From NCBI RefSeq assembly GCF_000143415.4, contig NW_003314278.1, forward strand, positions 1,024,682-1,088,681: a stretch of 64,000 nt of DNA. The letters are read 5' to 3'. This document shows, piece after piece, positions 1 through 62,074 of the stretch. The notes below the pieces were generated by a model. It ran no database searches. It was given only the letters and a program-made list of their open reading frames with translations, and was not told where the DNA came from. This DNA is from Selaginella moellendorffii. Its lineage: Eukaryota > Plantae > Lycopodiophyta. Every line of letters starts with the position of its first letter. The stretch's first letter is position 1. The position numbers and the translations under genes were made by a program.

Positions 1-1419
1 CTGGTGAGCTTCCCGCGCCTCTAGATTCCTTAGCAACACTTCTTGTGCTAGAGCATCGTTCTCATATGCTGTCCGCACATCGTCCCAGAAGGTTGCTGTT
101 GCGCTAGATATCACCAACCTTAAGCTCGCTTTTCGACTTAGCACATCTGCCACGATGTTGCTCTTCCTAGGCTTGTACAGAATCTCGCAATCAAACTCGG
201 CCAAGGCATTGGCCCACCGACCTTGTTTCCCTCTCAGGTCGGGCTGTGACAAGAAGTGTTTCGTTGCCACATTGTCCGTGTAAACCTTGAAGTGTCTCCC
301 AAGGTAGTGTCGCCACTCCTTGAGCGCCTTGACCACTGCAAATAATTCCTTCTCGTGGGCAGGCCACTTCCGTTGAGCCTTGTCCAACTTCTTCGAGAAG
401 AACGCTACTGGATGGTTGTCTTGCTTCAAAACTGCGCCCAACGCAAAGTCTGAAGCATCCGTGTCTACCTCAAAGTCCTTACCAAAATCTGGTAATGCCA
501 ACACCGGAGCCTTCCTCAACTTCCCTTTGAGGTGGACGAATGCCGCCTCGCATTCTGCTGTCCATACCATCTTCCTTTTTCCTGTTTGGTCCGTTAAGGG
601 CAAGGCTACTCTCGAATAGTATCTGATAAACTTTTGATAGTAGTTGCATAGCCCCAAGAACGCCCTCAACTCATGTACATTTGATGGTCGCTCCCATTCC
701 TGGATCGCTTGGACCTTCTCCGGGTCCACCTTGAGCCCGTCCTGGCCCACCACATGCCCGAGAAACTTTACCTCTTGTTGAGCAAAGTCACATTTGCTCT
801 CTTTAGCATACAGTTTGTGTTCCCTTAGTTTCTCAAACACCTTCGCCAAGTGTTCGGCATGCTCCTCTAGCGTCTCGCTATAGATCAGGATGTCGTCGAT
901 ATAGACGACCACGAAGTGATTCAGATAGGGTACAAAGATGTGGTTCATTAGCGCCGAAAATGTGGCCGGCGCATTGCATAGCCCAAAGGGCATCACCAGA
1001 AACTCAAAACTCCCATACCTCGTTCGACAGGTTGTCTTCTCGACATCTTCCTCGGCTACCCTGATCTGGTAGTATCCTGACCTTAGGTCAATCCTCGAGA
1101 AGTATTTTGCCTTTCCCAACCTATCGAACAGGTCCTCAATTCTTGGCAAAGGGTACTTGTTCTTCTTTGTATACTTGTTGAGCAACTGGTAGTCTATGCA
1201 CATGCGCATAGAACCATCTTTCTTTTTCACAAATAACACCAGCGCCCCATACGGCGACTTGCTCAACCTAACATACCCTTTGTCCACCAACTCCTCTAGT
1301 TGGCTCTTGAGCTCCTTGAGTTCTTTTTCGTTCAAACGATAGGGGGGACGAACCACTGCCTCAGCACCCTCCACCAACTCAATCTTATGTTCTATCGGTC
1401 GTGCGGGGGGCGTACCCAT
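1..1419 (-). CDS. Ty3/Gypsy reverse transcriptase-RNase H ORF, open to window edge, no gag/protease upstream
   Basis: Manual translation from ATG at 1419: [18 protein letters not shown]...PPYRL...[11 protein letters not shown]...[12 protein letters not shown]...VYIDDILI...[12 protein letters not shown]...HEKELFAVV...ADVLSR. No stop in 473 codons; absent from the ORF track because it runs off the window. Confidence 0.92.
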
Positions 1420-1803
1420 GAGGCTTGTGGTGGTCCCACGGTGTTCCGAAATGTTGTCCCAAAGTCCCTTCGGGTCGAGCCCAGCTATCGTTTGAACGAA
1501 CCACCGCCTCAGCACCCTCGACCAGCTCAATCTTATGTTCTATCGGTCGTGCGGGGGGCGTACCCATGAGGCTTGCGGTGGTCCCACGGTGTTCCCACGG
1601 TGTTCCGAAATGTTGTCCCAAAGTCCCTTCGGGTCGAGCCCAGCTATCGTTTGAACGAACCACCGCCTCAGCACCCTCGACCAGCTCAATCTTATGTTCT
1701 ATCGGTCGTGCGGGGGGCGTACCCATGAGGCTTGCGGTGGTCCCACGGTGTTCCCACGGTGTTCCGAAATGTTGTCCCAAAGTCCCTTCAGGTCGAGCCC
1801 AGC
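1347..1803. repeat. Three tandem copies of a ~159-bp unit (leader plus RT start); innermost copy 10 bp shorter
   Basis: Anchor CCCAGC recurs ending at 1485, 1644 and 1803; ORF 1385..1780 repeats a 53-aa unit. Confidence 0.95.
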
Positions 1804-1884
1804 GGGAGCAAACTGGACCAGCCAGATGTCAATCAACATGTGGTGTAATTCCCTTAACCAACCAACAGAGTCAGACCCGAGACC

Positions 1885-1896
1885 GCTCCGATACCA
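1885..1896 (-). promoter_or_regulatory. Primer-binding site (tRNA-Met-i type)
   Basis: Minus strand reads ...CTTACA TT TGGTATCGGAGC directly after an LTR end. Confidence 0.88.
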
Positions 1897-1898
1897 AA

Positions 1899-2090
1899 TG
1901 TAAGCTCTTGAGTTTGGACTTCCCGGGAGGTCACCCAACCCAGTACTATTCACACTCAAGGACGCTTAACCCTAAATATCCCAAGACCCTTAACCGATTG
2001 GAAAAGGGGGTGCACTCTTATTCATGGGCCCTTTCCCTCTATATTTGAACCCCAACGGATCGTCTCTCAAGTCGTTCCCTTTAGTTGCTT
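1899..2090 (-). repeat. 5' LTR of the left-edge element (far boundary uncertain, ~2069-2090)
   Basis: Ends in CA 2 bp before the PBS; abuts the chromodomain of the next element. Confidence 0.65.
1916..1970 (-). ncRNA. 5S rRNA-derived segment (box A-IE-box C region) inside the LTR; not a full 5S gene
   Basis: GTTAAGCGTCCTTGAGTGTGAATAGTACTGGGTTGGGTGACCTCCCGGGAAGTCC vs remembered plant 5S GTTAAGCGTGCTTGGGCGAGAGTAGTACTAGGATGGGTGACCTCCTGGGAAGTCC: about 47/55 identical, no gaps. Confidence 0.88.
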
Positions 2091-2094
2091 AAAA

Positions 2095-5000
2095 AGGCCA
2101 GGAGAATGAATCAGGTTGTCCGTAGGTTCCCAAGTGTGTTCCTTAGGTCCGTAACCCTTTCAGTCTACCAGATAGTAGAGTTTAGACTGTGAGACCTTGG
2201 AATCAAGGATGTCTTGAACCTCATACTCAGACCCATCTTTGAGCTGCACTGGTGGAGGTGGAGGAATGACTCGATTTGGAATAGGACTGGGAATATAAGG
2301 CTCAAGGAGAGAGGAGTGAAAAACGAGGTGAATTTGATATGAGGAAGAAGATGATAAGTGATAGGATTAATGATGGCAATGATAGGGAAAGGACTGAGGC
2401 ATTTGAAATCATGTTTGGGACAGGCCTAGTGGTGGAGATATTTCGCCTGAGGAGCCAGACTTTATCCCCGATATTGTAAGGGGGACAATCCTGACGATGG
2501 ACATTGGCAAATGTTTTATGAGATTCCTGAGCACGATGGAGGTGGAAGGAAATGGAGTTGTGGATTTCCTGGAGGTTGGAGACAAATGCCTCAGAGCAGG
2601 GATTTGACCGAGAAGATTTGGATGGAGAAGGAAGTGAGAGATTGAATTGGGGATTTTGGCCAGAGTTTGCAAAGCAGGAGGAAACTTGAAGGGAGGAGTG
2701 AACAGAGTTGTTATAGGAGAACTCAGCAAGGGGAAGGATATCGAACCAGTCATCTTGATGATAGTTGATGAAGCACCTTAGGAATTGTTCCAATGTCTGA
2801 ATCGTTCACTCGGATTGTCCATCAGTTTGAGGATGATATGCCGCCTATGAAGTCGGAAAATTTCCGTGAATACCAGTTTTGCCATGTTCTCGCACGAAAA
2901 CTCCTTGGTACACGGCAGGAAGTGCGCCATCTTTGTGAAGCGATCCACCACGACTAAAATGCTATTGAAGCCTCCAGAACTCGAAAGATCACTCAAGAAA
3001 TCCATGGAGATGGATTCCCAAGGACCTAAAGGGACCGGAAGGGAACGAAGCAAACCTGAAGGAAGGTGGCAAGGTACCTTATTCCAAGTGCAAGTGTCAC
3101 AGCAGGTAACAAAAGCTTTGATGTAGTCGTCCATGTGAGGCCACTAAGAGTCCCATGCAACCAACTCATAGGTTTTCGCAATGCCAAAGTGACCAGCAGT
3201 TTGGCTATCGTGGCACGCCATCAGGACCAACCTTTGAGCATCACCTTTAGGAATGTAAAGCTGCTCCCCACAGTACAACAAGCCATCTAAGAACTCGAAC
3301 TCATCAAATCGCCGGCAGTTGGGAGTCACTAGGTGTTCAGCCTGAAGATGGGGGAAAATTTCGCTAGCAAGGTCGTCAGATTGAAGATCATTTCTTATTG
3401 CATCCATCAAGGAGGAATTCTGAGGGGCTAGGGAAATTGCCATAACTTGAAGCCAATCAGGACTGAGGATAACCTGATCCTGTTGATCGAAGGTAGGATT
3501 ACCAGGCTTGAGACTGAGATAGGAGCGCCTTGAAAGAGCATCAGGAAGGCCTTGAAGCTTTCTAGGTCTGTATTTGATAACAAAGTCAAACCGACTCATA
3601 AATTGTGCCCACCTTGCTTGACGACAGCTCAAAACTCGAAAAGTGGCAAAGTACTTGAGATTTTTGTGATCCATTCAGACCGTTGTTTGATGGCTTGCCC
3701 CCTCCAAGAAATGACGCCACTCTCCAAAGGAATCCACAATGGCAAGCAGCTCCTTGTCGTGGATTTCATAATTGATCTCCGCAGGCTGGAATTTCCGAGA
3801 ATGGAAAGCGACCGGATGAAATTCCTGATCCGCTCCGAGTTGAGACAACACAACACCGATGGCAAAGTCGGAGGCGTCTGCCTTGATGAAGAAAGGTTGT
3901 GAGGGATCAGAATGGATCAAGACGGGAGCAAAACTAAAGGCTACCTTGAGTGTGTTGAAGGCTTGCTGGGCAGCAGTAGACCAAGAGAAGGGAACATCCT
4001 TGCGAGTGAAATGCATGAGAGGAAGGACAATGTCAAAGTAGTGTTCAATGAATTTGCGGTAGAAGTTGGTGAAGCCAAGGAAAACCTGAACGTTCGACAT
4101 TGATTGTGGAGGCTCCCATTCGAGAATAGTCTTGACTTTGGCAGAATCCATCATGATACCCTCAGGAGTGACAATGTATCCAAGGAACTCCACAGACTCC
4201 TGATCAAAGGAACATTTCTCAAACTTCATGTATAGGCCATCTTCCTGCAGCTTCGCCAGCACCTTGCGCACATGCTCATTGTGCTCCTCTTGAGTTGTTG
4301 AGTAGATGAGGATGTCATCGAGGTAAATGATCACCATCTGATCAAGAAACTCCCGAAAGACGTCGTTCGCCATGTGTTAGAAAACTGCTAGAGCATTTGT
4401 CAAGCCAAATGGCATGATAGTGTACTCGAAGTGGCCATAGCGGGTTCGGAACATAGTCTTTCATTCATCGCCAGGCCAAATCCGGATCAGGTTGTATGCT
4501 CCATGGAGTTCGATCTTGGTGAAGAAGCGGGCACCGCCGAGGTGTTCCAACATGTCCAAAATCAGGGGCAGTGGATAACGGTTCTGAATAGTCACCTTGT
4601 TCAAACCCTAGTAGTTGATGACTAGCCGCAAACTCCCATCCTTCTTCTTGGCAAAGAAGATAGGTGCTCTAGCTGGGGACTGCGAATGCTAATTGTACCC
4701 TGAGGCAAGGTTCTCATCCACGTACTCTTTGAGGGCCTTAAGCTCGGACGAGGATAACCCATAGATAGGCCCCCACAGAGGTGACGCTCCTTCTTGTAAA
4801 TCAATGGGATAGTTGTAAGGTTAATGAATAGGCAGTACACTAACTTTTTTTTTGTCAAACACATCCCCAAAATCATAATACTTCTCAGGAAGACTGACAG
4901 GAGAAACATGCAAAGAAAAAAGGAAAATAGATTCTTTATGAAGGAGTTCTTTCATAGTGATTGTGGAGATAGGAGAAGGTGTATGACTAAATGGAACGAT

Positions 5001-5619: not shown

Positions 5620-8600
5620 ACAGGGTCGTTTCCCGATTGCAACAGAGGTGGACCTTGAGGTAGAGTGAACTCAAGCTCACATCCTTCAGCATCAGCTAGC
5701 ACGTATGCTCTGCCTCCGATGTGTTGTTGGACAAAGTAGTGGCCGGTCCAGTGAGGGGAGAACTTCAAAGGTGGTGTCAACTACTTAAGTAGAACAAGGT
5801 CACCAGCCACAAATGGTTTGGTAGATTGTTGGTGATTGATGACTGACTTGATCTTCTGCTTGCCTCGGAGATGTTTAGTTGTGGATTGTCATTGTTCTTC
5901 CAAGGCAAGAACGTCCAAGTCACAAGCATGAAGCTTGTCCTCATTGCTAAGTTACATCGCTGAATCCAGGTACACTACAATGTCCTGTAATGCTGCTAGG
6001 ACCACAAAGGAAGTAGTGTTAGCAACCAAGAACTTGCTCGGATCCATCACACGCTTCTGCCGCATATGAAAAGTTGGCTGGAACTCTTGGATGGTCATAA
6101 TCCAAGATAAAGTACTTGGACTGTGAACCGGTCACTATAAAAGAAAGGTCAGCACATTAAAGTAGATGTGGAAATGGATATAGGCTCCAGCGAGAAAGTG
6201 ACGAAATCACTCCAAGGTGTAAACAACAACCACTACTTCTTTTTCCGCATCCACGTACTTCTTCTCAGTTTCCTTGAACAAATGTGAGGCATAGTATGTT
6301 GCATGTGGTAGCTTGCCAAGCTGTGAACATTGGCAAAGGCATACTCCAAAAGCCTCTGTACCCATTGTGATATAAATGTCAAAAGGAAGTTGTTGTTCTA
6401 GTGGTTGGAGTACCGGGACCGTGCAGAGTGACTGCTTCAGTGACACAAAGGCTTGTTGCTGGGACTCACCCCAGAGAATGGAACATTGTGTTGTAGCAGA
6501 GCTATTAGGGGCCATGAACGTGCATCATAATTGTGGAGGAAACAGCGAAAGAAACCCGTTTGCCTGAGGAAGCTGCAAAGTTGCTTCACGTTGGTTGGTG
6601 GGTTCCGATCCAGAATCTCCTAAGCCTTGCCTACCTGGGGCTTGATCCCATCTTGTGAGACATCAAAGCTCAGCAACCAGTCTTCAGTCACCCCGAATTT
6701 ACACTTTGCCGGGTTCAATGAAAACCTATGTTGTCGGCAGTGAGTGAAGATCTACTCCAAGTGCACAAGGTGGTGCTCAAAGGAGTTAGAGATCATGCAC
6801 AGATCATCCATAGGCACCCTCAAGGTGCCTCCAATCAAGTCATGAAAGGCGTGGGTCATAAAGCGCTAAAAAGTAGCTCCGGCATTACACAAGCCAAACA
6901 GGAAGACGTTGAAAGTGAAGACACCCCAAGGTGTCCAGAAGGCTGTAAGATCTCAATGATCGGGATGAATGAAAATCTGGTTGTACCCTGAAAAGCTGTC
7001 CATGAAAGAGTAGTAATGGTGTCCAGCCATCTCATTCACAATCGCATCGATAAATGGAGTCGGAAAGTGATCTTTCGCAGTTGCCTTATTCAAGTCTCGA
7101 AAGTCAATGCAGAGGCGGAGTTTTCCATTTGCCTTGTGTGCAGGGACGAGATTGGCCACCCACTATGAGCTCTCCAAAAGGTAAATAAAGCGGGCTGCCA
7201 GAAGTTGCTCAATCTCCAACTTCATCTCTAAGTGAGCTATCGGGCTGAAACGTCGCATCTTTTGACGGACTGGTTTGGCTGACTCTGAAAGCACAATACT
7301 ATGCATGATTGTGGCCATGGGAACTCCTTGAAGCTGGTTGTAGTCCCAAGCAAACACATCCTTGAAACAATAGAGGAGTTGCAAGAGCTTTGCTGTGTTT
7401 GTTGAAGTAAGTGATGTGGCAATAAAGACTAGGTCCTTGTCATCACCTAGGAAAATAGCATGAACCCTGGAGTCTAGAGAAACCTTGGGCTCATGGGGCT
7501 CATCTATCTTAGATTCCTCCCTAACTTTGGGAACTAAAGTGCAGGGAGTGCCTTTTGCCTCTCGCATCATGGTGATTGCTTGATATGATAACCTGTCTGC
7601 CCAAAAGTTTTCTTCACGAGGGACACTTTGAAAAATCACCTGAGAGAACTTATCTTTTAGGTTGACCATCCGCTGCCATAGCTCTTTCAAGTTCTCTTTG
7701 CGGACTTGGTATTCTCCAATAAGTTGGCATATGATGAGTTGTGCATCTCCAACGAAAGTGACTTGCCTAAATTTGAGATCTGTGGCCAACTTCATGGCAC
7801 TGATAGCTGCCAAGTACTTTGCTTCATTAGCTAATGTTGCTGGCAAAGTGATAGAGAGGTCGGCTACTTTGTTCTCTACAGAATCAATCATCCAAACTCC
7901 AATGCCGGCAACCTGGTTTTGGGGTAGAAAGCACCGTCAAAATAAGCTGTAATCATAGGAGTGTCCTCTTCTTCAAATAAAGATGTTGGGGACACCACAT
8001 CTGGCAAAACCGTCTTTAGCAAGTCTAGCAAGAACATTGTTGTTGGATCTAGAGTCTTCATCTGTTGTTCTCTTTGCTTCTGATGCTCTGAGAGCTCAAT
8101 GTCCAATGCAAGGACTATAGCCAAGTACTCTGCAAGTGAAGGAAGATCCTCCACCGAAGTCAAGTCCAAGTTTTGTGCTAAAGTTTCAGTGTAATACACT
8201 TGGGCCTACCGGGAGCTCCACAGTAGGAAATTTTGAACTCAAAGAGCTATAACTTGCATGCAGCACGTTTGACTGGCTTGATTCTTTCTGCCAATTGTGT
8301 GTCTGGATGTCATCTTCTATCTCCAAGAAACAGCATGACAAAATATGCTCGGAGTCATCAGCTACCGCAATTTTAGTAGGAAAATGCTTGCTGTGTGACA
8401 CCTCAGATAGTTGCTAAGGAGGATTGAGCTCGGCTGTGTCCTGTGAAAGATGGGTCTGGTCTAGAGTGACTATGTCCTTAAGCTCCATAAGAGAGAGTTA
8501 GTCCCATGCAATCGAGAAGCCCTTCCTCTATCAAGAAACACTCCAAAAAGCTAGATATGGGAGCCCATACTCTATAAGCCCTGCCATCAAATAAAGAGGG

Positions 8601-11755: not shown

Positions 11756-13139
11756 CATTTTGCAGTGAGCATTGAAGCATTTCTCGTGTTTGAGCAAGCG
11801 TTGAGGGAGGCGCCCCTCCTTCCCCCAACAGGGGTTGGACCCCAATGGAGCTAATTTGGCCAGGAAAGATTAGTTTGGCTCAGGAAGGTTATACCCAGCT
11901 GTTGGGTGATGAAATAACCACTAGGAAGTCCAAAGTTAGAGTGAATACAGATCGATAAGCAGAGTAACTTAGTGAAGTGTTTAAGAGCCTACTCTAGTTC
12001 CTCTAAGAGATCAAATGGTCGATGCTCCCAGTCCAAGTGTGGGTGGCACTACCTACTTGGATACCTGGTGTGGCTCAATGGAACCTCGCTCTAAGCCCAT
12101 GGCTAAAGCACCCAAAGGTAGAAGGTGGGGAGAGTACCTATGAGGCTCACGTATGGCCATAGTGTTCCGAAATGTTGTCCCAAAGTCCCGGACTGTGGAA
12201 AGGAAGAGGAGTAGTCCTTTGGTGTGGCAACCAAGGATACGGTCACGCGGTGAGGAAGTCCTAGAAAATAGTGGGACTTGGTGGTCAGGCTTGTGGGCTT
12301 TGATCCAATGGCAATACTGGCGAACACAGCCATGAACAGAAAGGGACTTGGTGGGGACCAAAAAAGGGATATTGGGGAAAGTTGTTCCCCATGTCTGTAG
12401 GCATCCTAAGGATGCTAAAGAGTGGATATAGAATGATCACTCATGGACAGACAAACTAGTCTTTAAGAGATGGGACTGTGATGTAGGTGGTGTTGGACCA
12501 CTGGTGTGACCAAGGTGAGTGGGCATGGCCTTAGCATAACAGGCTGATATGTCAGTGGTACCTTGGGGTGTCAGTCATGGGATTGGACATGTGGAGCACT
12601 TGGACCAAGTGCAAAGGTTGAGTGGCATGGATGCCATTCTCGAGGTTAGCAAGCCTAAGGTCCTGAATAGGATTAACACAATCTTATGTATTGGTATTTG
12701 TATTGCTATGTTGTACTCAGCTAAGTAAATTTGACCAGTCTTTAACAAGGTCATTGCTCGCCAACTTTAGGATTGAACATGAGTGCATACTATGGCTACT
12801 CTTTTTACGAGTCCTTACTGTGTTAAATTGTTGTAAAGTAATTGTGGCCTACCTCTAATTATGTTGTATAAAGTTGTGTGCATCCTCACTATGAACGTCT
12901 GCGTTCTCTAGTCGATGGTGATGTTCAAAAAGTCTGAGCTGAGTAGTGGTTGTATTCTAAGTGTTGTCCTCAAGGTTATTGTTGATACAGGTTTCTAGAT
13001 TCTTGATTCTTGTATTTTTTATCTTTGATCACTGTCCATGCTTTGATTAACTATTGTTTTTATTCCCCATTGTCCCCAAAAGACCTCCACTTATTAAATC
13101 CTTAGTATTTGATTTCTATTTGCTTGGTTGCTTCTTAAT

Positions 13140-14971: not shown

Positions 14972-15570
14972 CATTGGTGGGATTCCAATCACAACCGGTT
15001 GCGGCCTTTCTGGAGTTGACTGTGGTCTCTCTGCAGACATGGAAATAAGAGCGCTGTTCTCCTCCACGCGCGAGATGAGCTTGTTTGCCGTGGGAGGAGC
15101 CAACAAACTCTGGTGCTTGTGCCTCGGCTCCTTCTTCAACCCTATCTAAACTTGTTGCTGTCGCCAAGCTTTGCCTGCATCATATACCAACCATCAATCA
15201 GCTAGCGTTCTTTCCAAAGCTTCTACAAACCTCCTTTGAAGGTGTTTTTATGAAGCCCATCGCTCTTTGCACGAAAGAAGTAAAGATGCCTCTGTTTGGC
15301 GTTCCTTTCGCTGGACTAACGATCTGATGAAAGAATACAAGTCTTAATCAAAGGTACACAAGAGCAAGTCGAGTTACCTATCCAGGCCTAAAGTCAGGCT
15401 CAGAAATGCTTCTCGCTGGCATGTTGGATCTTCTCATATTATCACTTATGGGGTTCTATTGATGCCGATGAGGCAAGTGCTACATTGCTTCTGCTAGAAG
15501 CTGTTGCGGGACGGTTATTAATATCAGCATTATCAGAAGCTTTCGGGGGCGAAGGGCCTATCATCTTGTG
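14972..15570 (-). pseudogene. SEC16: Intron-containing duplicated fragment of SEC16 (copy of ~49680-50302)
   Basis: Near-identical nucleotide match including introns, with small indels. Confidence 0.88.
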
Positions 15571-15693
15571 AAATACACTTTGAATGCCTGAATACACTTA
15601 CTTTAAGCCAACTTTTCACTATAACACTTTACTTTAGAGCTACATTGCTCAAAGAGCTCTCACTTAAGAAGGAAGAAATTTTAATCCTATCTA

Positions 15694-16478
15694 TGGCCAT
15701 TGTAATTGAGCTAGGAGATTGTGATAATAAAGTTCTTACAATCGATATAAAGATTGGTAAGACCCAAGCTAGATGCAAAACAAGGAGCAACACAGCCCAA
15801 TGGGAGCCAAACTAATGTCTTAGGTGGTCGGATATGCATTTTAACCACTATCCCTACTATACATTTGGAACCCCCCACAGCTGCTCCCCCCCCCCCTGAG
15901 GAACACATGCTTTGGGCTTTCACCCCACGCCTCCATTAGTACTAGGAGTTAGTCTCTGGGACAAGCTTGAAACTTACTAAATATGGAATGGTGCTAGATT
16001 GCGAATTTGGACACGAGATGAACACCATTGTGTTCAGGCTGATCTCTACATTCCGTAGATATGCCAAACGAGCTAATCTAGACACTTACCATAAATAGCA
16101 TTTGGGACAAAAATGAGACCAACACAAAAGGTGTGATAGCGAGGGTGTTTGGCAGACACAGTAAGCTATCATTTAGTGAATATTGAAGGACTAGTCTCAA
16201 TATCACGGGGGTTCCCAATACTAGCAAGTGCAAGTCAGCATCATGAGTTTCTTATCACTGTGTCAAGTATGCTTGACTTAATGACAACATAGGATTTCCT
16301 TCCTTAGTGCCCTTCCGGTCTAAGTGCACATGTGCTGATCAGTTTCTCAACTAACTTGGGTGGAGACCATAATGAGAACCAGCAATACTGATCTGTTGCT
16401 ATCGTGGCAATGAGGAGAGAGTGTCCGTAAGGACTAGCTGACAAGTATCTTTTGATACCCGAAGTCACATTCGTGACA
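15694..16478 (-). repeat. 3' LTR
   Basis: Homologous to 34917-35674; on the minus strand it is preceded by the purine tract AAGGGGGTAAGAG. Confidence 0.9.
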
Positions 16479-20014: not shown

Positions 20015-23000
20015 TCAGACTGTTATTTTTTGCCTCCAACGCCTATACAATAATCTTGGAATTTCATCACTCTCCACACTATCAGGATTTAAACCCAATA
20101 GTAATGCCATCTCTTCTCTAATACGTCCACGCTCATGTTCAATGGTCGAAGAACCCATCCGGTTGAGCAGATTATGGAGATGCGGATAGTGCTTGGCTAG
20201 ACAATATACATGCCATAAATGATGACTGGTGTCTGTCCGATCAAATGGCTTCTGATATACCGTTCCATCTGCCATTTGGTTGATTTCTGCAGCCACCTCC
20301 TGGACTGGCCGGTTCTCTATCACCATCGCTTCAAGCCGTTTTGCAAGGTCCCCCAGAACATACGGTTTCTTCTCCCTAGTTTCCATACTGCAAGAGATGG
20401 GGTGCACTGCATATGTGTGCGTGTTCACTGCAGTTTTAATTGGTGAGTCATCGATAATGAGGATTTCACTTGACCTAGCAGTCCGGTTCATCACTACAGC
20501 CTCTGCCTTAACGAAGATGGGCTTGCTACCCCTCACATGGACCATAGTCAAGCAATCCTCCTACGTTAGGAGAAAGTCAAATGGTAATATTACTCGCGTC
20601 TGATCGTGCATCATCTGTAGCAACGTTAATGCATTGTGGCGCATCATGGATGTCCAAACTCCCAATTGCAAATTGAACCCGGCCCTCTGTTTTAAGTGTC
20701 GCATGGTCATTATTAGATCCCGCAGTTTCTCCCGTGTGATTAATGTGAATCTGTCTCTTTTGACCAACTTGCGACCGCAGGCTTTGGAGGGTGCAGTGAC
20801 ATTCGAGGACGAGCCACGCTCATGGGAGAAAAGGACACCGTTCAGATAAAAAACGATACAGTACTTTCGCCGTGACTCTGAAATGAAATGCGTCAGCATA
20901 AAAAATGGTACAAGTCAATTTTACCATCTACAATATTAGCGAATGGTGCTCCCAATGGTCGTTCAGAGGGTTTTGGTCGAGGAAACGTGAAGGGCGGAAA
21001 TACTCTCCTCTGCAATGTGGGGTCAATTGCATCCGATGGCGTGTGGGCACATGCCATTTCAGCTGTAGACTCTGGTACAACTGGCTCAACAGTGGCATGG
21101 GGTGGTTCCGATGGCGTGTGATCACACGCCATTTCAGCTGGTGCCTCCGTTGGCAAAGTGGACATGACCGAACAGGCAGCAGGGGCGGTGTAGGGAGGTT
21201 CCAACGGCGCGTAGTCAGACGATTGGGCACACGTTGGAAATGAGGATACGACCGGCTCGGCGGCTGGGGCGGCCTCATGCGGGTCCAATGGCGCCTGGTC
21301 ACCGTCAGTTGGATACGTGGACAAGATTGACTCAGTGGTATGGGCAGCATCAAGTGGAGCGTGGTCAGCTTGCTTGGCGTTGATATGGATAGTAGCCTCC
21401 ACCAGCTTTGATGACTCTTGCAGGCAAGTAGAGTCCACTGGCGGATCCATATGCATGTCCAAATATCTCCCTTCGATTGAGATGGTATCCTCCCGTGCTA
21501 CTAAAAACAAACTCATTAGCACATTGAATCGACTATACTGTATTTACCATCAACTGCTATTGAGGAACTAGGACCGATATCACTTGGGCGCACTGCTGAT
21601 TCTGAAGGATTGGACATACGTTTCGACCCTTGCTTGGCACTATCCTTCCTCGACACTAAAGGCTAGAGTTTGTATCTTAATTCAACTGAATAATCTCTAC
21701 TTACCATTTCTTCTGCGACCTACATGGACAATGTTAGAAATGGTAAAAGGTTAGGAATGGATGTACTATTATTTACCTGATGGTTTGTCTTGTATGACCT
21801 TCCTCCGCTGCTCTTTGGCCACCTCAGGCTGGCCATCGTCGTCATCATCGTCATCGTCGTTATTGTGATCGTCACCATTGTGAGGACCATCCAAGTCCTC
21901 TTCGTCCTCCTCTTCTTTATCCTCCTCTTCTTCGTCCTCCTCTTCTTTGTCCTCCTCTTCGTCCTTCTGCTCTTCCTGCTCATTATCTTTCTCTGGCTCC
22001 TCATCCCCCTCTTGCATTTCTTCCATAGGCTGCTCAGGCTGGATTGCTTGTTTTTCCAGGACCATCTTGGAAAAATCATCTGGCCGAGTCTCCATCTCAA
22101 AATACAAGACATCCATAGCCTGTTTTAGTGCGTGACCTAGGACCGTATCCTCACCCGACTGTCTTAACATGGTTTCTGCACGTTCTTGCACCCTTCGAAG
22201 ACGACGAGATGAGAAAAACGTGGCCCTGACTTGAAAAGCATCCCTCATCCATTGTACCTCTCCATTGAGATTGGGGAAGGGGAGTCCGCCATAGGAATTT
22301 GAGTCAGAAGGTGGTGACTGGCTCCTTTCACTCAGCCCTTGATCTGCAATGAATGGCATGAGCACACACGCCATAACCGCGAGGCATTACCTATCATCTT
22401 TTCGTTGCCCTTCTTCCTTTTCGAATCAAACGCCTCTGATCCCGACGACTGTCCAACGTGCTTTCGCTTTTTATGACCACTGTCAGTTTGAGCTTGGCTG
22501 GTGCTTGCCTGTTTTGCCTTTGAAGAAGTGTCTCCTGCAAGGAATGGCATGAGACCACACGCCATTGCAAATATAATTTGTACCTCCTTTTTTCCTATTG
22601 CTTGTCTGTTTGTCCTTCTTCGACGCGCCACCAGTGCGCTTTTCAGTCCTCGTGTCTGAATATTCACAACGATCTATAATCAAAATGGCGTGAGGCCTCA
22701 CGTGACCTTACCTTGTGCAGGTTGTGACCTCGGCCTAACATCAGTAGCTGTTAACGCCGTTTCAGCATCTGGGGGTGGCCACGCTCCTGCATACAGAGCT
22801 TGTGAGATAACATTGAAACTTAAAGTGCGTACTCACCAGGTTCGTAGAGAAGATACTGTTTTTCTTTGGCAACTGTAATTATATGCTCCATTGAAGTCAC
22901 CTCTTCAATGGAGTTTGTCACCGCAACACACGGGACACCCTTGAGTAGTGCGGCTCGAAAGAATAGTCCGCCGCAGTTGTACTCGACAACGCATTTGCCC

Positions 23001-25620
23001 TTGGAGTCACCCGCTATTGCGTTGAAGACCCAGCTGAGCATTTCCCATGCTGCACCTGGAGCTTTCTTTGGATTCGAAAGCTCCATAGCCGTCTTCAGTT
23101 CCTCAGGCACGGGTAAATTGACCTCCCTCAGATCAATTCGATCGGCTTTGTTGAACGAAGCTGGGAAGTCACTCCAGTCCCACTCTGCTGCAGGACCAAT
23201 AACAAGGGCGACTGTGAAGATGCGGACATTCGTCGGTATCTTCTTCTTAGCCATTATCCCATGGATCTCCCGCATCTCCTTGCCTTTCAACCGAGCTTTC
23301 ACCTCGTTCAAGGCCTTCCAGAACTTGTGATAGGATTCGGAGTCGTAGATCATATAGTGGACTGAAGATTCCACCTCCGCAAGTCCCACCATTAAGTCAA
23401 TGATGGAGCTGACTTTGTCTGCACGAGTGATCTCCTCGTTTGTGAAGTCCATCACACAAAAGATGTTCTTGACCTGCTCATCTCCGCGGGAAACGATGCT
23501 CCTCCACCTTTGATCCTCATCCGAATTCACGTATACCCGGTAAGGTTCTCGATAGGCCTCTGCTGCGGGGTCGAGCTGTTTCTGAAGCCGGCGGTCGACA
23601 TCCCTCTTAATGAAATTTGGATACTGATCCAACTTCTCAGCTTTACTTTTCGTGGCATCCCGCAGCAGATCGATGTACTTGGGGGCCCCCTTCACGTACT
23701 CGTCGATCTCTTCATTTGACAAGTCCAGCTCTTCCATCATCTCTTGCGTGGTGTCGATGCTCACCCTCGCCACGGCCACTTGCTTGAAGATCCAATCCTT
23801 CAATAGCGCACGAGCTCTCAGAGTCGTGCACAAGTCCTCGTATGTCACAATATGGCCGGGAGTCATTTTGGTCTTGTTGAAGACTACCTCACCACGTAGA
23901 AGAGCATTAGCCACTGTCAGAAGGTCGTCGTCGTCTAGAGACCGCGAGAAACGCAAGGCGTTGAGCTTCAAATCATTGGGCTTCCGGCCGTCCTCCACAC
24001 CCATTGAGTTTAGCAACTCCCCGTCATGGTACCTCCTTAGCACATCTACCCATTTGTCAAAAACAACTTTTGTCGCAAGTAGAATGTTATGGATGCTGAG
24101 TGTGTCATTGACCCCCAGTGTTTTCGAGAGAAGACTCGAGAATTCCTGCAATGGAAATGGCGTGAGGCCACATGCTATGCCACATGCAACGAGGCTTACC
24201 TGCCAGGCGCTAGTTGCTAGTGCACGTCCTTGTCCTGGTTTTTGTAGCTTCTTCAGTTGAACCCAGAGCTTCCGTGTTCGTGCCAATATCTCGTGCAGAC
24301 CCGATTTGTAGCACGTTTCTTGCTTGACATTCTGCGCGTGGGAGATGTATATGATAGATCGGAGGGGCGAGTTGCCTTTTATCAGGCGGACAACTCTTGT
24401 CTTGAAGACTTTCTTCACCTCCTCGCCCACCATAATATCCACAACTATCTGTTGCATCGCCAAGCTAGAATGCTGCCCGGAGACGGCATAGAACCGGATG
24501 TTCTGATCGTCCAACACCTTCCTATTGATCAAGTCTGGAAACCTCGTCTCGCCCTTCATTGTTCGGTAGTAGGGGATCACGTCTGCGATGTCGGGTGTTA
24601 CTGGACTTGCCAGCATCTTCTGCTTCAGTTTCTCCACCCACTCATCAGATACTAGCCTGTGGTTGTATTTGCTTTGGATCTCGATACGGCTCACGTCGAT
24701 TGTATATACTTTGTTGGAATAGTAACAAGTACTATTATCTGCGACAATTTTTGCTGCCTCTTCTTGCTCTTTCTGCTCTTTGCGGCTCTTCTTTTTGGTG
24801 GGTGTAGTGTTCGAACCTGAGGCAATGGCATCACCGAGTAGCTTCTTTTTTGGAGCAGCAGAGTCGGACGTCGGCTTGAGCTTGACCACCCTTTTCTGCT
24901 TCGGGGTAGTTTCCAGATCGACCCCCTTCCCCTTCGCTTCGCAAACTGGAGGCACTCTCAACGGCTCAATGTTGGAATATAGTTTTTGAACATCGCCGTA
25001 GGTGAGGTCCGTGGATTCCATGTGATCTTCATAGACCCGCAGCGTCTTTGAAATTGTGGGCCTCCTGGACAACCTCTCCCTAGCTCCCTCTAGGAATTCC
25101 TCATAGCCGCTGCCCCCCTCCGGGAAGCCGCTAGGATGTGCAAGGTGGATCTTGAAGGCGGACGCTGTCTCTACCACAAGTGCCAGTCCATATTCTTGCA
25201 TGGAACTGCATGGAGTGTCTGTCACTTGGATGAGGATCCCCATGCATTCTTTTCTCCCACCATTTGTGTTGTACAGCATCAGATCCTCGCCTTCCATCCC
25301 GAAAGTCCAACTGGTGAGCTCCTCCCCCTTCTCTGCATCCACATTGACAGTGGCTGGAAGAAGAACGCAATTCCTCGCCTGTTCAGAAATGCACAACAAT
25401 TAGAGCTGACAGATGAAAAGCTAGCAGCTGGAAATAACGTGAGGCCACACGCCATTCACCACTGCATCAGATGTCTTGAGGCTGCATCCTAAGATGGCGT
25501 GAGGCTACACGCCATCTGTAACCGGACTGCACTCGAGAGCCCAATCGGTGCATGCCAATGTTGCTACTGAATGGCATGTGGCCTCATGCCATTTTCTACT
25601 TGGTTTAAAAGACTTACCAT
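20015..25620 (-). pseudogene. Large multi-exon cargo gene: ParB-like region, degenerate DNA amino-MTase-like region, acidic/low-complexity linker, C-terminal FCP1/NIF-like HAD domain
   Basis: ORFs 22820..25399, 21769..22374, 20893..21522, 20561..20899 and 20015..20551 can be joined by ~40-56-bp GT-AG introns. Motifs: FYAVSGQHSSLA; KCVVEYNCGG..AALLKGVPCVAV; IVFYLNGVL..GVWTS..KPIFVK..LIIDDSPIK. In-frame TAG at 20561-20563. Start position uncertain. Confidence 0.65.
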
Positions 25621-28604: not shown

Positions 28605-31600
28605 ATGGCCTTCAGGGTTGGGGAAAAGGTTTACATTTTGAATGGTGGGAAGAGAGTTGCAAAAGGGACCCTTGTGTCTATGGATCGGAACTTTGTTGTA
28701 CACTGTCAAAGGCTTGGGGAAGGCAATGCTGCTGTATCAGTAGAGACTGTCTTCGATGGGAATGTGGTCGCTATTGAACGAGGAGAGATGGTCGTCGGGG
28801 TAAATGTTGTTGTTGCCTTGAAAAATCTTCAGAAGAAAGCAGATGTTGGGGACAGCGCAAGTGCGACGCATGTTCCCTCCGTGGATCTTAAGAACCGTGC
28901 TACATGGATTCAGGAAAAAGTGTTTCTAAACAACCCCGAGGGGGAGGTGGTAGCTGAGGGCTTAGCCACAGTTGTCGATCCAAGAGATGCGGTTGCTAAT
29001 CAAGAATTGGGCTGGGATGATATTGGAGTTGCGATTTTAGAGGTTGTTGACACAGAAGAAAACAGTCTGACTATTAGAAGCATTGTGCGGTGGAAATTGA
29101 GGCACTTAGTGTTTGAGAATGTGAAGGATTCACAATCAAACACCACTACAACTGATGACAGAACATCTCTTCATGGGAAAAGAAAGTACACCTTCCTAAA
29201 GCGCAGCTAAAGGGATCTGAGCAACGAACCGAAAAGGCAGAAAATGGCGATGGAGGTTCGAATGGTCTCGACAGTTGCTTGTTGCAAGAGGAGGTGCTGT
29301 CAACATGCTGATTGGGATGCTATTGAAGAGGAGAGAGCAAGATACAAGACATTGTCCTGGAAGGCAGCTCGCAATTTTGTGTATGAGGCATTACGGTCAT
29401 CTGTTGATGCTTCAGAACATCAGGTGGGGGGCATGGTCTTCCAGAGGGGTTTGGTCTGCATGAAGGCATGGAGAATCATTTATGGAGTCCCTCGAACCAC
29501 ATTCTACAGAATCAAAACTGAGTTCGAGGAACAAAGGGTTCAACAGGCAGTCCATGGGAACGACGGTACGCACAAAACCAGGGGTCATGTTGTATATGGA
29601 GAGGCAATCTTCAAGAGGTTTGTCGAGACATGTAGCGAGCAGCAACCACATAAAACCCGCCTCTTGGAAGATGGAACACGAGACACCCAACGAGTTCTCC
29701 CTTCCATGTATACCAAGGGGGCCATATTGGAAGATGTGAATCGGGAACTCCAGAGTAATGGCTACAGGAAGCTGAGCCAATCTAGATTTAGTAGATTGTG
29801 GAGCAACAGGTTCAGGGATGTGAGTATAGGAAAGTACTCCAGCTTTTCAAAGTGTGACGAGTGCACTGCTATCAAAATGGCTTTGTCGAAGAATTCTTGC
29901 AGCGCTCAAGAGCGAGAGACGTTGGTTAGAAGGCGGCTCGACCACAACATCGAGCAGAGAAGCTGCAGGACTGCATATTATCATAACAGGATTCTCTCCA
30001 TGGAGAGACCTGACTCTTACCTCTGCATCATCCACGACAAAATGGACCAGAAAAAGACGTGCTTACCTCGACTCAATCCTGGCCCCAAGGCAATCTCTTC
30101 ATCCATGCAGCTGCCTGTGTCTCTGTTTGGCATAATCGCTCATGGGCATGGTGCCCAGAACTATGGGAACTTCTTTGTACCTCTATGGGGTGGCGGGGGT
30201 GCAAACATGATGATTGCGTCCCTAGCAAAACACTTAAGGTCTCTGCAAAGTGCGCAGACTGAGCTGAACGGCCAACCCTTGCATAAGGCCCTTGTCGATC
30301 GAACCCCATACAGGGTTCAGCTGGAGGAGGAGCAAAGGCTTGCAGTATCGCGTGGGGCCCCATGCCATCCCAGTGAATATGTTGGCCGTCAGATTGTAGG
30401 GTTATCACGTGAGGCCTCATGCCATTCCGACGAGGCTGGTCGCCCGGTGAATGCACAGCCTCATCCAAACGAAGCAGAATCTCAAGGAAGTTCTTGCGGC
30501 CGATGTGGCCTTCCACCCCATCTTCTGCTCCAAATAGACAATGCTGGCAGTGAGAACAAAAACATGTACGTCTTCGCGTACTTGGCAATGCTTGTTGCCA
30601 AAGGCATATTTGAAACGGTTACACTTGGCTTTCTCATGGTTGGGCACACTCATGAAGACGTCGATGCCATGTTCAGTCACCTGGCAGAGTCCCTCCGGCG
30701 ATCCAATGTCCTCACCCTCCCACAACTCTACGATGAATTCCAAAATTGCATCAAAGGTACTGTTGAAGCTGCACTTCTGACAGAGGTTCCAGACTTTAAG
30801 GGGTTTGTAAGAGGCTACATCAGGGACGGATCCGAAACGCTGATTGGCCACTCCAAGCCTCTTCAGTTTCATTTCAGCATGTGTGACGGTGCTCCAGTGA
30901 TGAGGTACAAGATGAGAGAATGGGACACAGTGTGGCTGCCAGTGGATGGCATTGAACTCTTCAAGAGAGATCCCATAACTGGGGAACCTATGATTCCTCA
31001 GGGTTCCCCACGGCCGATGCACCCGGATGGACTCAAAGACCAAGAAAGTATAGTGGCCGGGATTAGACAGCATATTGCCTTCTGGAAGAGGGGGTTGGTG
31101 TTTGGTGGAGAATCCTATTTTCAGAGGTGCAAGCCTTTGCTCGAATACTGGGAGAAGATTATATCTGCTATCCAAAATGGGCCGGTTGTATATGAAGAAT
31201 TGGAAGAGTCCTTTTGGCCAGAACCCAGAGCACCAGATAGTAGCGGAACAATGTCCTCTGGAAATGCAGTGACAGATAACGATGTTGAGGATCACTATTG
31301 TGGGCCGAGGAACAAGAAGCCGGATTCAGCATTCAATCCAGTACAGGTCTGCAAAGGAACAGTCTGCTTGTCAGACCCAGTAATAAAAAACAAATGATAT
31401 GGGTGGGGCGCTGCATCACTGATGCAGAGGAGGACGCGAAAACTAACTCCTTCAATGTAACTGTGGAGTGGTTCAAGCCAAGTTCCGGATATACGAACAA
31501 TTGCCTAGAAAAGAGATGGGTGCTGAATCCAAGGGATCCCAGCATGAGCATATCGGTGGATAATGTTGTGCATGGTTGGATGCGGAAGCAGAGTGCCACC

Positions 31601-31745
31601 ATCACCTTGCCAGACCATGCAAGAGATGCAGCAAGAGCATTCATAACCCGGGTTCAAGGTGAGATTCATTAATATTCCTTTACTAAGTTTCTAATGTATT
31701 TTATTTCAAGGTGAACAATCCGAATCTGAATCAGAGGAGGCGTGA
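28605..31745 (+). pseudogene. DDE/D-type transposase (GHTHEDVD family; DUF7869/Sola-like, superfamily uncertain) with one premature stop and one frameshift
   Basis: ORFs 28605..29210 and 29244..31397 share a frame (TAA at 29208). Motifs CCKRRCC, FSKCDEC, IIHDKMDQ, LQIDNAGSENKN, FLMVGHTHEDVDAMFS. Frameshift ~31345 into ORF 31298..31672; short last intron ~31659-31710. Confidence 0.82.
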
Positions 31746-34700
31746 TGGCATGTGGCCTTACGCCATTCCTAGGTGAGATGATACAAATAACAAGTATAAA
31801 TTCTTAGTTGTTCTAGCAAATCTTACTTAAATGTCAAGGTGAACAACCGGAATATGAATTCATCGGATTGTTATAACAAATTGCGAGGTGATGGCATGAG
31901 GCGATACGCCATTTGAGAGTGGTAGACTTACCTATATGAGGTGAGTGAAGTATTTATTAGAAATACCTCATTCAATTGTGCACTTCTAAGTCTTTGCCCA
32001 CTTAGTACTGTTTGCATGTTTTTATTTTAATTCTTTCTCTAAAATGTTATTTAGCATGTGGCTTCATGCCATTGCTCTCCACAATCATGCATTGAATTTC
32101 TATCCTTGCATAATACTTCTCCATATATATAGCATGTGCGCACATGTGATATGGTTCATTAGGCCTGATATAGTTCGTGAGGTAAAAACTTGACAATGAG
32201 ATTTATTATACAACTAGATGGACTCAGTCTGGACATAAGGTCACCGCGCTAGTCACCATGCCCCAGATATGTCTAGCCCCTGGACAAAAAACATATAATT
32301 TCACGTCATTTTCAAATACTTGAAAATTTGTACCTAGTCCCATTTTACTGAATAAATCCCACTTTAACGAAATAGAGCATAACTGCAAATCAAGTCACGA
32401 AAAATACTTAGCCTTTAAGAGTTGGTCAAACAAGTCATCAACACGAGGCAAAGGATAACTATTCTTGACTGTGATCTTGTTGAGTGCCCGATAGTCGATA
32501 CACATCCTCATGGTTCCATCCTTTTTTATAACAAAAATGACGGATGCTCCATAAGGTGATTTGTTTAGTCGGATATGACCTTTGTCAAGAAGCTCCGTGA
32601 GTTGCTTTTTGAGTTCAGCCATCTTCTTGATGTTCAACCAATATGGAGCTTTCGTAGGTGGTTTAGAACCCGGAATAACCTCAATCCGATAATCAACCTC
32701 ACGGCTAGGAGGTAGCCCTGGTGGCAAATCCTTCAGGAAGATATCCTGATTCCTCGCCAACAACTCCAATATCTTTTTTGGTATAGGATCAACCTCATCA
32801 TTGATTCGAATTGAGTCACCAACACCCTCAGCTTCTATCACTTAAACCCAAAAGGTCCGACATCCCCTCTTAGCTGTTTTTTGAGCGGCCCTCACAGTCA
32901 GGAATTTTGCATCCCAATCCTTTGAGGAACGCTTTTGCAACTAGAAGGACACATCAGGACATCCTTCGGACTTCAACGTGATACGACTTTGTCCAACACC
33001 ATAAATCCCTTTTATATATTTGTTAAAGAAGTCCATACCAAACACCATCTGAAAATCTAGAATCTTCAACACTACCAAGTCCACTCTTTCTTTCCACTTG
33101 GATATTTTTATTGGAACATCACTCACAAACTTTCTAGCTACTTGCCCACCTTCCGCAAACTAAAAGTGCATAGGTGACATTTGCTCAGCATTCAATCCTA
33201 ATAACTTAACTAAGTCTTCGAATATCATGCTATGCATAGCTCCCGTGTCAATCATCACTTAGATTCAGTGTCCACGGACAAAGCCTACCAAATACATCAA
33301 CGGATCAGTGTTTGCATTGATTGCAAGAAAAGCTTGAGGAAAGCAATGAAAGTTACTCACCTCCTCTTCCTCATAGTCTGCATTGACCAACTCGTCAACC
33401 CCTTTAGCTTCACCACCACCGTCTTCCCTCATGACATTAACCCGAGACCTTGTTTTATGCTTGTTGGGACATTCCGAGGACCTATGTCCCGACTCTCCAC
33501 AATGGAAGCAATGACCCACACTACCCGTTCCGCTAGGAGCATATTTTGCAGATTGCTGCTGCTTGTACCCACTAGGAGGAGGAACAGAGGGCCTAGGACC
33601 AGAAGAAGTTGTTGATGGTCTCCAACTACCACCACCTTTGTTAACCATTTCTTATGAGCCTCCAGAGCAGAACCTGCTTTCCACCCTCTGTTTCCGATCA
33701 CCTTGTTTATTCCCAGAATTTTTATTCTTATCCAAGTTACCAGTATACGATTACTGATATTGTTCCATGAGTGAGTGACTAAAGGCAACTTGCTACACTG
33801 CCTCCTTACACTCCAAGTACGTCTTCAGCTTAAACTTCAAAATCTCATTACAAGAAAGTGAACTTAAACCCTTCAGGAAATAACTCCGAACATCTTCGTC
33901 ACTCATATTTGCAATCATAATGCACTTCTGAGCAAGCATTAATGTAATGTATGAGATCCCCTCGCTGCTTTAACCGCTGCAGCTCCGCGCGAAGTCTTAG
34001 ACCAAGATCATCCAGCAAGTATTCCTTACGGATACAAAACCACATCTTAGTCCAACTTCTAGTCTGCCCTTTTTCAGCACACACTTGGTGCCACCAAGTT
34101 TTGGCATGATTGGTGAGAAAGGATTGCGCGCACACAACTTTGTACAATCATCTACGTCTGCCGCTATGAAATATTTTTCCATATCGTAGACCCAGTCTTC
34201 CAAAACTTGATAGTGCCGCATGCTTTTGAAGATGGGTGGTTTCAGAGGCTTGAACTTTGAAACTCATACAACCGGGGGCGACTGCAAAACTTTATCATCC
34301 TTAGAACTTGAGGAGGAGTTCGGTTGCTTAGGCTTAACTGATTTAGCTGTCTCAGCTTCTTTCTTCCTCTTCTTGTTCTCCTTCTTCAATTTGTGAATTT
34401 CCCTTCGCAAATTCTTGATGTCGACTTCCTGAGCCGTACGCTGCAATGCCACAGCATTTAGCTCTTCCTCTTCTGACTTGGCCTCAACCTCTTCCACAGC
34501 ATCTCTAGTAGGAGTTTCTTCCTCTTGATTCGCCCGTCTAGAGGTTTCAGCATCATCAGCACAGTTCCTCTTCACCATCCTACTAGCTGCACGCATGCCT
34601 CTATTAGTAACTGAACATGCATACAACGTTCTTACCAAATGGTGCAATCCAATTAATCCTACACAGGTCGCTTCAGATCTACTAGAAAAGTCTGCATATG

Positions 34701-34916: not shown

Positions 34917-35674
34917 TGGCCTAACGCGAGGAGGAGGGTACTCCACTGACTAGAGCAGCGTAGAGCTTGGGCTTAGACCCAAGCCGGACGCAGAACAAGG
35001 AGCGACACAGCCCAGTAGGAGCCAAACTAATATCTCAGGTGGTCGGACATGCATTCCAACCACTATCCTTACTATACATTTGGAACCCCCCCCCCTTCCC
35101 CTTGAGGAACACACACTTTGGACTTTCACCCCAAGCCTCCCTTAGTACTAGGAGTTAGTCTCTGGGACAAACTTGAAACTTACTAAATATGGAATTGCAA
35201 ATTTGGACACGGGACGAACACCATTGTGTTTAGGCTGATCTCTACATTCCGTAGATATGCCAAATGAGCTAATCTAGACACTTTCCATAAATAGCATTTG
35301 GGACCGAAATGAGACCAACACAAAAGGCGTGATAGCGAGGGTGTTTAGCAGACACGGTAAGCTATCATTTAGTGAATATTGAAGAACTAGTCTCAATATC
35401 ACAGGGGTTCCCAACACTAGCAAGTGCAAGTCAGCATCATGAGTTTCTCGTCACTATGTCAAGTATGCTTGACTTGATGACAACATAGGATTTCCTTCTT
35501 TACTGCCCTTCCGGTCTAAGTGCACTTGTGCTAACCAGTTTCTCAACTAGCTTGGGTGGAGACCATAATGGGAACTAGCAATATCAACCTCCTGCCGTCG
35601 TGGCAGTAAGAAGAGAGTGTCCATAAGGACTAGTCGACAAGTATATTTCAATACCCGAAGTCACATTCGCGACA
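34917..35674 (-). repeat. 5' LTR
   Basis: TG..CA, homologous to 15694-16478; followed on the minus strand by PBS-like TGGTATACCAAAAT. Confidence 0.9.
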
Positions 35675-39117: not shown

Positions 39118-39762
39118 TGGCCTAACACAAGGACATGGGTACTCCACCAGCTAGCATGGAATGGAACTTGGGCTTAAACCCAAGCTGGATGCAGAACAAG
39201 GACAGACAACTAGACTATGCCTCAGGTTGGTCAGCCATGCCTAACTTACCCACTATCCCTACTATACATTTGGAACCCCCCACAGCCCCCCCCCCCTGAC
39301 CTTGAAGAACACATGCATTGGGCTTTCACCCCACACCTCCATTAGTATCAGGAGTTAGTCTCTGGGGCAAACTTGAAATTTACTAAATATAGAATGGTGT
39401 TAGATTGCGAATTTGGACATAGGATGAACACTATTGTGTTCAGGCCAATCTCTACATTCTGTAGCAATATTGAAGGACTAGTCTCAATATGTGAGGGTTT
39501 TTGTCAAGCCAGTGCAAGACAGAGCAAAAGAAAACTAAAAAGTCAGGCCAAGTATGCTTGGTTGAATAGACACTTAGGAATTCCATCCTTATGCTCATCT
39601 AGCTAAGTACAGATGCAAAGTCTAGTTTACTAACACTTGAACAAGAGGGGCTAATAAAGGGTCTAGCAATACCGACTTTCTGCAATTGTGGTAGTAAGGA
39701 AAGAGTGTTTGTAAGGACTGGCCGACAGGTAACTTTCGATACCCGAAGTCATATTCGCAATA
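39118..39762 (-). repeat. Third, more diverged LTR of the same family with adjacent PBS-like site and leader (truncated element)
   Basis: Starts TGGCCTAAC, ends GAAGTCATATTCGCAATA; internal deletion of roughly 120 bp; PBS-like TGGTATGCCGAAAT next to 39117. Confidence 0.85.
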
Positions 39763-62044: not shown

Positions 62045-62045
62045 T

Positions 62046-62057: not shown

Positions 62058-62074
62058 AGCATGTTCTTTTGGGG

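Follow-up and report, generated by a model that had tools for sequence, protein, structure and literature searches.

[quoted passage not shown] The 5S segment in each LTR would act as the type-1 internal Pol III promoter of a non-autonomous TRIM, whose replication would rely on the proteins of an autonomous element. This autonomous partner of Cassandra is still unknown (PMC10886601, PMC7215508), and a coding Cassandra would have been important for that reason. In the searchable literature, Cassandra is recorded from ferns and seed plants. In a 48-genome TRIM survey that included S. moellendorffii, 5S sequences were reported for no TRIM family except Cassandra, and Selaginella is absent from the species listed there with complete Cassandra elements.

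The fern elements used here for comparison, those of Sphaeropteris cooperi, Didymochlaena truncatula and Nephrolepis exaltata (Kalendar 2008/2020; PMC10853983 suppl. table 2), are 565-606 bp in total, with LTRs of 187-208 bp, an internal domain of ~190 bp and the PBS TGGTATCAGAGC (PMC10853983 suppl. table 2), which lies 8 nt from the 5S sequence (PMC7215508). The published definition of Cassandra combines box A RGTTAAGYRHGY, 15-25 nt, box C RRRATRGGTRACY, 5-200 nt and the PBS TGGTATCAGAGC (Kalendar 2020, PMC7215508). Flowering-plant Cassandra elements have LTRs of up to ~400 bp, both of which contain a ~70-bp 5S core (box A, intermediate element, box C) at 25-75% of their length and never at their ends, together with a Met PBS and no ORF (Maiwald 2024, PMC10853983). 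In S. moellendorffii itself, two other TRIM systems bear on the present locus. The 104-bp LTRs of SmoRetroS4 are common to a Ty3/gypsy element, SmoLTRA4, which is complete (4,373 bp, with a 1,218-aa ORF between two LTRs) and for which 5S is unreported (Gao 2016, PMC4717578). [quoted passage not shown]

The DNA analysed here is a 64-kb stretch of the S. moellendorffii genome (the window; Table 1). According to the original prediction, it contains a 5S promoter segment within the LTR of a Gypsy element that encodes RT, and this element would be either a coding relative or ancestor of Cassandra or a case of independent capture of a Pol III promoter. The 5S segment, its place in the LTR and the Met PBS behind it were all confirmed, as was the Cassandra-like character of this part of the locus. 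The link to the coding part was not.

Table 1. Features of the composite locus, its host element and the related copies. Coordinates without a locus prefix are those of the window.
Feature	Location	Strand	Remarks
5'-truncated Ty3/gypsy pol 'B'	1-1419	-	Pfam RVT_1, RT_RNaseH_2, RT_RNaseH
Filler from dispersed non-coding repeat 'F'	1403-1468	-	65-75 bp; duplicate copies at 1551-1627 and 1710-1786
Tandem array, 159 bp x 2.4	1429-1803	.	TRF, 99% matches; each unit spans both junctions
TRIM internal-domain remnant	1784-1884	-	colinear with L011:4193-4293
tRNA-iMet PBS TGGTATCGGAGC	1885-1896	-	2 nt (TT) past the LTR; 1 mismatch to the iMet PBS
5' LTR (195 bp) of Cassandra-type TRIM	1899-2093	-	starts TTTAAGC (TG mutated to TT), ends GCTTACA
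5S-rRNA-derived segment	1902-1989	-	cmscan RF00001, 29.2 bits, E=6e-4
Pol III type-1 internal control region	1929-1971	-	box A 1971-1960, 18-nt spacer with intermediate element, box C 1941-1929
Sole T4 run of the LTR	2002-2005	-	immediately ahead of the 5S-like body; present in all four LTRs compared
Older decayed Ty3/gypsy chromovirus 'A', host of the insertion	2094-4916	-	tblastn 4916-2853 and 3134-2103 (with chromodomain)
Repeat F copy	11830-12672	-	same family as the filler source; uninterrupted counterpart of the L011 TRIM insertion point
Complete TRIM	L011:3985-4577 (GL377573.1)		593 bp, non-coding, two 194-bp LTRs ~98% alike
Solo LTR	L009:6915-7108 (GL377713.1)		84.5% identical to window 2091-1887; 5S segment 35.5 bits

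The 5S segment was examined by cmscan with permissive filters on 601 bases (1700-2300). The alignment covers RF00001 model positions 1-120, with 8 nt in place of 40 model positions, and is strongest in the internal control region. Because its score is lower than the RF00001 gathering score of 38, the segment is absent from a default Rfam scan, which gave no match at the gathering score in the whole window. An ungapped 55-mer (1916-1970, minus strand) is identical at 46 of 55 positions (84%) to a genuine plant-type 5S gene (L002) and at 42 of 55 to a second such gene (L001). The segment is in sense orientation within the LTR; 17 bp lie between the end of its strongest stretch and that of the LTR, the terminal GCTTACA ending at 1899, 17 bp past GGGAAGTCC.

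Measured against the published pattern (PMC7215508), the two boxes of the window copy are exactly 18 nt apart, and box A, box C and the PBS each contain one mismatch. When two mismatches in total were allowed, the box A-18 nt-box C pattern matched the window at this single place, and none of 100 shuffles matched. The box C of the family reads GGG[C/T]TGGGTGACC, each box being one base off the published consensus; because of these one-base departures in both boxes, the published Cassandra search string would miss the Selaginella family. A pairing resembling 5S helix I (alignment columns 4-9/79-84; window 1986-1981 with 1911-1906) is kept in the more diverged LTR of L009 through two compensatory double changes (C-G to U-A and G-C to A-U). 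This compensation, found among three distinct sequences, was equalled by 50 of 500 shuffles and is a hint below significance. RNAalifold, applied to the four 5S-like segments, detected no covariation within its own structure.

The reference 5S genes belong to four JGI metagenome contigs (L001-L004), which are tandem arrays of genuine plant-type 5S rRNA genes with the terminator TTTTTTGGTATC. They were the four matches obtained when metagenomes were scanned for box C followed by the PBS, and all four were rejected as Cassandra candidates on this ground. Arrays of 5S rDNA ending in TTTTTTGGTATC mimic 'box C plus Met PBS' and are a trap for pattern-based Cassandra searches. Among bacterial and archaeal genomes and viral contigs, the Cassandra pattern and an invariant 21-mer of the LTR found nothing but one chance phage match.

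Outside the window, ~113 kb of S. moellendorffii DNA at five loci was sampled. The two more repeat-rich loci contained one complete TRIM copy and one solo LTR, while the three gene-rich loci contained no TRIM copies. In the complete copy (L011), the first LTR is followed by TT, the exact PBS TGGTATCAGAGC and a 205-bp internal domain that ends in a purine tract before the second LTR, and the element is bordered on each side by the 5-bp TSD CCCGT. In both of its LTRs the 5S segment (33.7 bits) lacks the same internal part as in the window. Each LTR has exactly one T4 run, located ~15 nt ahead of the 5S body; the internal domain is free of such runs. The point at which this TRIM was inserted is uninterrupted in the window's copy of repeat F (~12538-12543), which constitutes an empty paralogous site: L011 3851-3985 and 4578-5290 align to window 12672-12538 and 12543-11830, respectively.

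The second sibling, in L009, begins with TGTAAGC, ends with GCTAACA, shows the same internal deletion of the 5S segment and is flanked on both sides by the TSD TATTA. A degenerate PBS behind this LTR was considered and rejected, the element being a solo LTR with its TSD. The 5S segment is thus integral to the TRIM family, being present in both LTRs of the complete copy and in the solo LTR (three sibling LTRs at two loci), and the TSDs in L011 and L009 show that the family transposed as an LTR element. Directly past the solo LTR (L009:7109-7643) there are two tandem units of ~275 bp (~86% alike), a further unit of which occurs at L011:5883-6058. The part of L009 between 5673 and 7631 (~1.96 kb) was inserted into a Gypsy integrase region, the window counterpart of which is continuous at 58699/58710.

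The window copy is a truncated member of the same family. Its LTR is 93-94% identical to both L011 LTRs, and the sibling LTRs have the terminal inverted repeat TGTAAGC..GCTTACA, of which the first dinucleotide is altered here. Window positions 2091-1784, which take in the LTR, the PBS and ~100 bp at the start of the internal domain, are 93.8% identical to L011:3987-4293; homology then ends, and the last ~90 bp of the internal domain, the polypurine tract and the 3' LTR are missing. Neither a second LTR nor a further 5S copy was found within the 64-kb window. By sequence, the LTR, PBS and leader of the window can be assigned to the fern-type Cassandra family of Selaginella. The copy sits within the chromodomain-coding end of an older chromovirus, A, in which stops and frameshifts are visible. 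The integrase-chromodomain frame of A is cut at the TRIM, its homology extending to 2103, ~13 residues short of the C-terminus of a relative.

In its dimensions (593 bp, LTRs of 194-195 bp, internal domain of 205 bp) the Selaginella TRIM resembles fern Cassandra, with which it also shares the sense 5S segment, the 18-nt distance between boxes A and C, the same PBS and the absence of coding capacity. As in the ferns, the 5S sequence lies almost at the end of the LTR, and the PBS follows 5 nt past the 5S match (8 nt in ferns). The differences are the lycophyte host and, for the window copy, its truncation and fusion to coding DNA. By every structural criterion examined, the Selaginella family is therefore of the fern Cassandra type, a likeness based on dimensions and the 5S core. 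The core with its boxes and intermediate element in both LTRs, the Met PBS and the lack of an ORF are common to flowering-plant Cassandra as well; unlike there, the Selaginella core occupies ~63-92% of the 194-bp LTR. Helenus-1_SMo, from the same species, is likewise a TRIM whose LTR contains a Pol III promoter and whose TSD is 5 bp long, but its promoter type and dimensions differ as given above.

The coding part of the locus, B, consists of an open RT-RNase H ORF of 463 codons, which extends from 1389 to beyond the window's left end. The original prediction had it follow the PBS. The ORF is indeed open, but it does not follow directly: 475 bp intervene, made up of the TRIM leader, filler derived from F and tandem copies, and tblastn of relatives found neither gag nor protease between the PBS and the RT, nothing upstream of 1410 resembling either. 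Homology to the relatives of B begins at window 1410, corresponding to their residues 76, 185 and 408, downstream of the protease. The nearest relatives are chromodomain-bearing elements with 61% amino acid identity, and the contigs of the nearest retrievable ones (chromoviruses) contain ordinary LTRs without 5S. Three protein searches for siblings of B (463 aa; representatives library; 160-aa piece) gave at best 61-62% identity over the full length and 74% over the short piece. None of the remaining RT fragments of the window exceeds 50% identity to B, and no sibling of B is among them.

Two breakpoints separate the TRIM from the pol sequence. At the first, TRIM homology stops at 1784 (..GACCTGAAGGG), where the canonical element continues differently and the microhomology GGG is present at 1786-1784. 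From 1786 onward the sequence is 86% identical to L011:4932-4996 and 82% identical to L009:6460-6520 and to window 12189-12127, all of which belong to repeat F; in L011, the F stretch that matches the filler is ~355 bp away from the TRIM insertion point. The interpretation of the stretch before the RT as a Gypsy linker was rejected in view of this match. At the second breakpoint, F homology ends after CCCCGC at ~1403-1408, exactly at the start of the RT homology. The breakpoints at 1784 and ~1403-1410 and the absence of gag and protease are direct observations. Repeat F is a dispersed, non-coding repeat of at least 840 bp with ~80-86% identity between copies (L011:3851-5320, L009:6104-6859 and window 11830-12672); it served as the target of the complete TRIM in L011, adjoins the solo LTR of L009 and may itself be the LTR of a larger element. 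An inverted, weak piece of 5S-like sequence within F (window ~11924-11956, L009 ~6690-6740) was rejected as a relic LTR, its scores of 20-22 being borderline relative to shuffle maxima of 19-22.

Both junctions are contained in a tandem array, each 159-bp unit of which joins the end of the TRIM remnant to the F piece and this in turn to the initial ~55 nt of the RT. Since every unit contains both joints, the triple junction must predate the duplication. Units 1 and 2 carry a frame-breaking 11-bp duplication (CGGTGTTCCCA x 2.8). The joints between units hold the 12-mer TTCAAACGATAG, the reverse complement of 1331-1342, located 14 nt further into the RT, which suggests fold-back template switching or slippage at the time the duplication formed. 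The filler also supplies an in-frame ATG (1419-1417), five codons ahead of the RT homology. The locus encodes a potential pol-only ORF starting at this ATG, without gag or protease.

Taken together, these data make it probable that the locus arose by secondary fusion of a truncated Cassandra TRIM to a Gypsy pol, and that it is not a coding Cassandra. The 94% match to a non-coding TRIM, the two breakpoints, the lack of gag and protease and the 5S-free LTRs of the relatives all argue against a coding relative or ancestor of Cassandra, and the alternative offered by the original prediction, independent capture of a Pol III promoter by a Gypsy element, found no support. In the sequence of events that we infer, the TRIM would have inserted into the chromodomain end of A and later lost its 3' half; the remnant would then have been joined, through the F filler, to the RT start of the 5'-truncated, chromovirus-like B. 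The fusion would be a rearrangement at the DNA level, by deletion or by end-joining that took up filler DNA, within a densely nested set of retroelements, and the junction block was subsequently duplicated in tandem, perhaps by replication slippage. Several observations count against this reading: the composite runs past the left edge of the window before its 3' end is reached; the intact ORF of 463 codons with its in-frame ATG shows more order than a random old rearrangement needs; and the complete 5' end of the LTR on a cleanly cut target resembles an integration, although it is silent on what was integrated.

Some of the same observations could be explained by copy-choice, in which the RT switched from B RNA to an F-containing RNA and on to Cassandra RNA within one particle, and the chimeric cDNA integrated into A. 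Short microhomologies are present at both joints (GGG at 1786-1784, CCCCGC at ~1408-1403), all pieces have the same orientation, the intact 5' end of the LTR meets a cleanly interrupted target and the pol ORF is open with an in-frame ATG. Moreover, work cited in PMC10853983 documents plant LTR elements that became chimeric by this route. We nevertheless regard this course of events as unlikely. End-joining repair just as typically leaves microhomology joints with filler, neither junction was found a second time in the window or in the five S. moellendorffii loci, and the composite's 3' end, where an LTR and a TSD would be expected, is outside the window on its left. Rearrangement of the locus continued, as the subsequent tandem duplication and the TG-to-TT change indicate, and with gag and protease missing and Pol III terminators in the ORF there is no obvious route to a genomic RNA from the 5S promoter. 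In its patchwork of families joined at short microhomologies the locus resembles the plant chimeric LTR elements and illegitimate-recombination remnants cited in PMC10853983; unlike the chimeric elements, it gives no sign of having multiplied. If copy-choice did take place, Cassandra RNA would have been packaged with a B-type RNA, pointing to the lineage of B as the helper. This would be the first physical hint of the lineage that mobilises Cassandra, and the composite would be a Cassandra derivative carrying pol.

Less probable still is a true Gypsy family with 5S-bearing LTRs, of which the present element lost gag and protease by internal deletion and the 593-bp TRIM is a deletion derivative. 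The pair SmoRetroS4/SmoLTRA4 provides a precedent in the same genus for a TRIM and a Gypsy element sharing their LTRs (Gao 2016, PMC4717578), and such an origin would be consistent with the PBS, the orientation and the open state of the pol ORF. Unlike in SmoLTRA4, however, the coding part of the window is reached only across breakpoints. The sequence leading from the leader to the RT is a fragment of repeat F rather than a Gypsy leader or a gag remnant, and nothing near the RT corresponds to the rest of the TRIM internal domain (L011:4294-4383). No coding sibling was recovered by the protein searches, and neither the window nor the ~113 kb of sampled S. moellendorffii DNA contains one with a 5S-bearing LTR, while the LTRs of the closest relatives are devoid of 5S. 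The Pol III terminators inside pol also speak against such a family, in line with the general argument of Kojima (PMC10886601) against long Pol III-driven partners. Finally, hardly any weight can be given to a chance similarity, a one-off 5S pseudogene fragment or an assembly mis-join: the cmscan score is under the Rfam threshold and the locus is repeat-rich with near-identical tandem units, but the same truncated 5S segment recurs in three more LTRs at two other loci (33.7-35.5 bits), the box pattern was absent from all 100 shuffles, and the joints share 3-6 bp, too little to mislead an assembler, and are both repeated in each tandem unit.

Under the secondary fusion favoured here, the 5S promoter would belong to the TRIM part of the locus. 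On the sense strand, T4 runs downstream of the LTR occur at 1009, 960, 487 and 431, and since they lie within pol, the promoter cannot serve the coding part: a Pol III transcript from the window copy could extend at most ~1 kb, to the T4 run at 1009, and would not yield a full-length coding genomic RNA. In 5S genes, Pol III starts ~50 nt upstream of box A. From a start at this distance, the T4 run of the LTR would fall ~20 nt downstream and define a short R region. This agrees with the short, 18-bp terminal redundancy of Cassandra RNA, as summarised in PMC10886601. From the conserved boxes and the single conserved T4 run per LTR, we infer that Pol III would be used and that the T4 run is a likely candidate for both the terminator and the R-region boundary.

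A complete copy, a solo LTR and their TSDs show that Selaginella, a lycophyte, has a canonical Cassandra family of the fern type. The searchable literature yielded no earlier description of a Cassandra-type TRIM from lycophytes, a provisional statement, as the 2008 original paper and Repbase lie outside it. If the family is truly unreported, the minimum age of Cassandra would move to the base of vascular plants, which would support the view of a single origin. The chimera could still link Cassandra to a chromovirus helper.

Several other features of the window were recorded. An ORF of 717 aa with a DUF7869 domain is located at 29244-31397 on the plus strand, and positions 30126-32187 are 98% identical to a stretch of GL377713.1 (L009:16973-19035), which is probably a young DNA-transposon-like repeat. 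An 859-aa ORF with a TTG start (22820-25399, minus strand) matched no Pfam family at E<=0.001. Several families of direct repeats of 120-300 nt, with 88-96% identity and 19-35 kb apart, were detected at 14972-16297, 35092-35493, 39292-39464 and 49680-50302; these are presumably LTRs or fragments of other nested retroelements.

At the right end, the window from 54.6 to 61.9 kb is colinear with L009 at ~86% identity, other repeats common to both being 93-98% identical. Starting ~60 bp past the stop of a PPR ORF in this region, the Met PBS TGGTATCGGAGC, with the same A-to-G variant as at 1885-1896, opens a further Gypsy element, D. The possibility that D shares the TRIM LTR, which the common PBS variant might suggest, was rejected, the two having no significant similarity. 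There is little room for a 5' LTR in D, which may be very short, as in SmoLTRA4, or truncated. D contains an open gag-protease ORF of 634 aa (62036-63937, plus strand), which continues into the RT at the window edge. The PPR ORF itself is intact (461 aa; 60600-61982, plus strand) and 90% identical to an S. moellendorffii protein, the similarity being lost in its C-terminal part.
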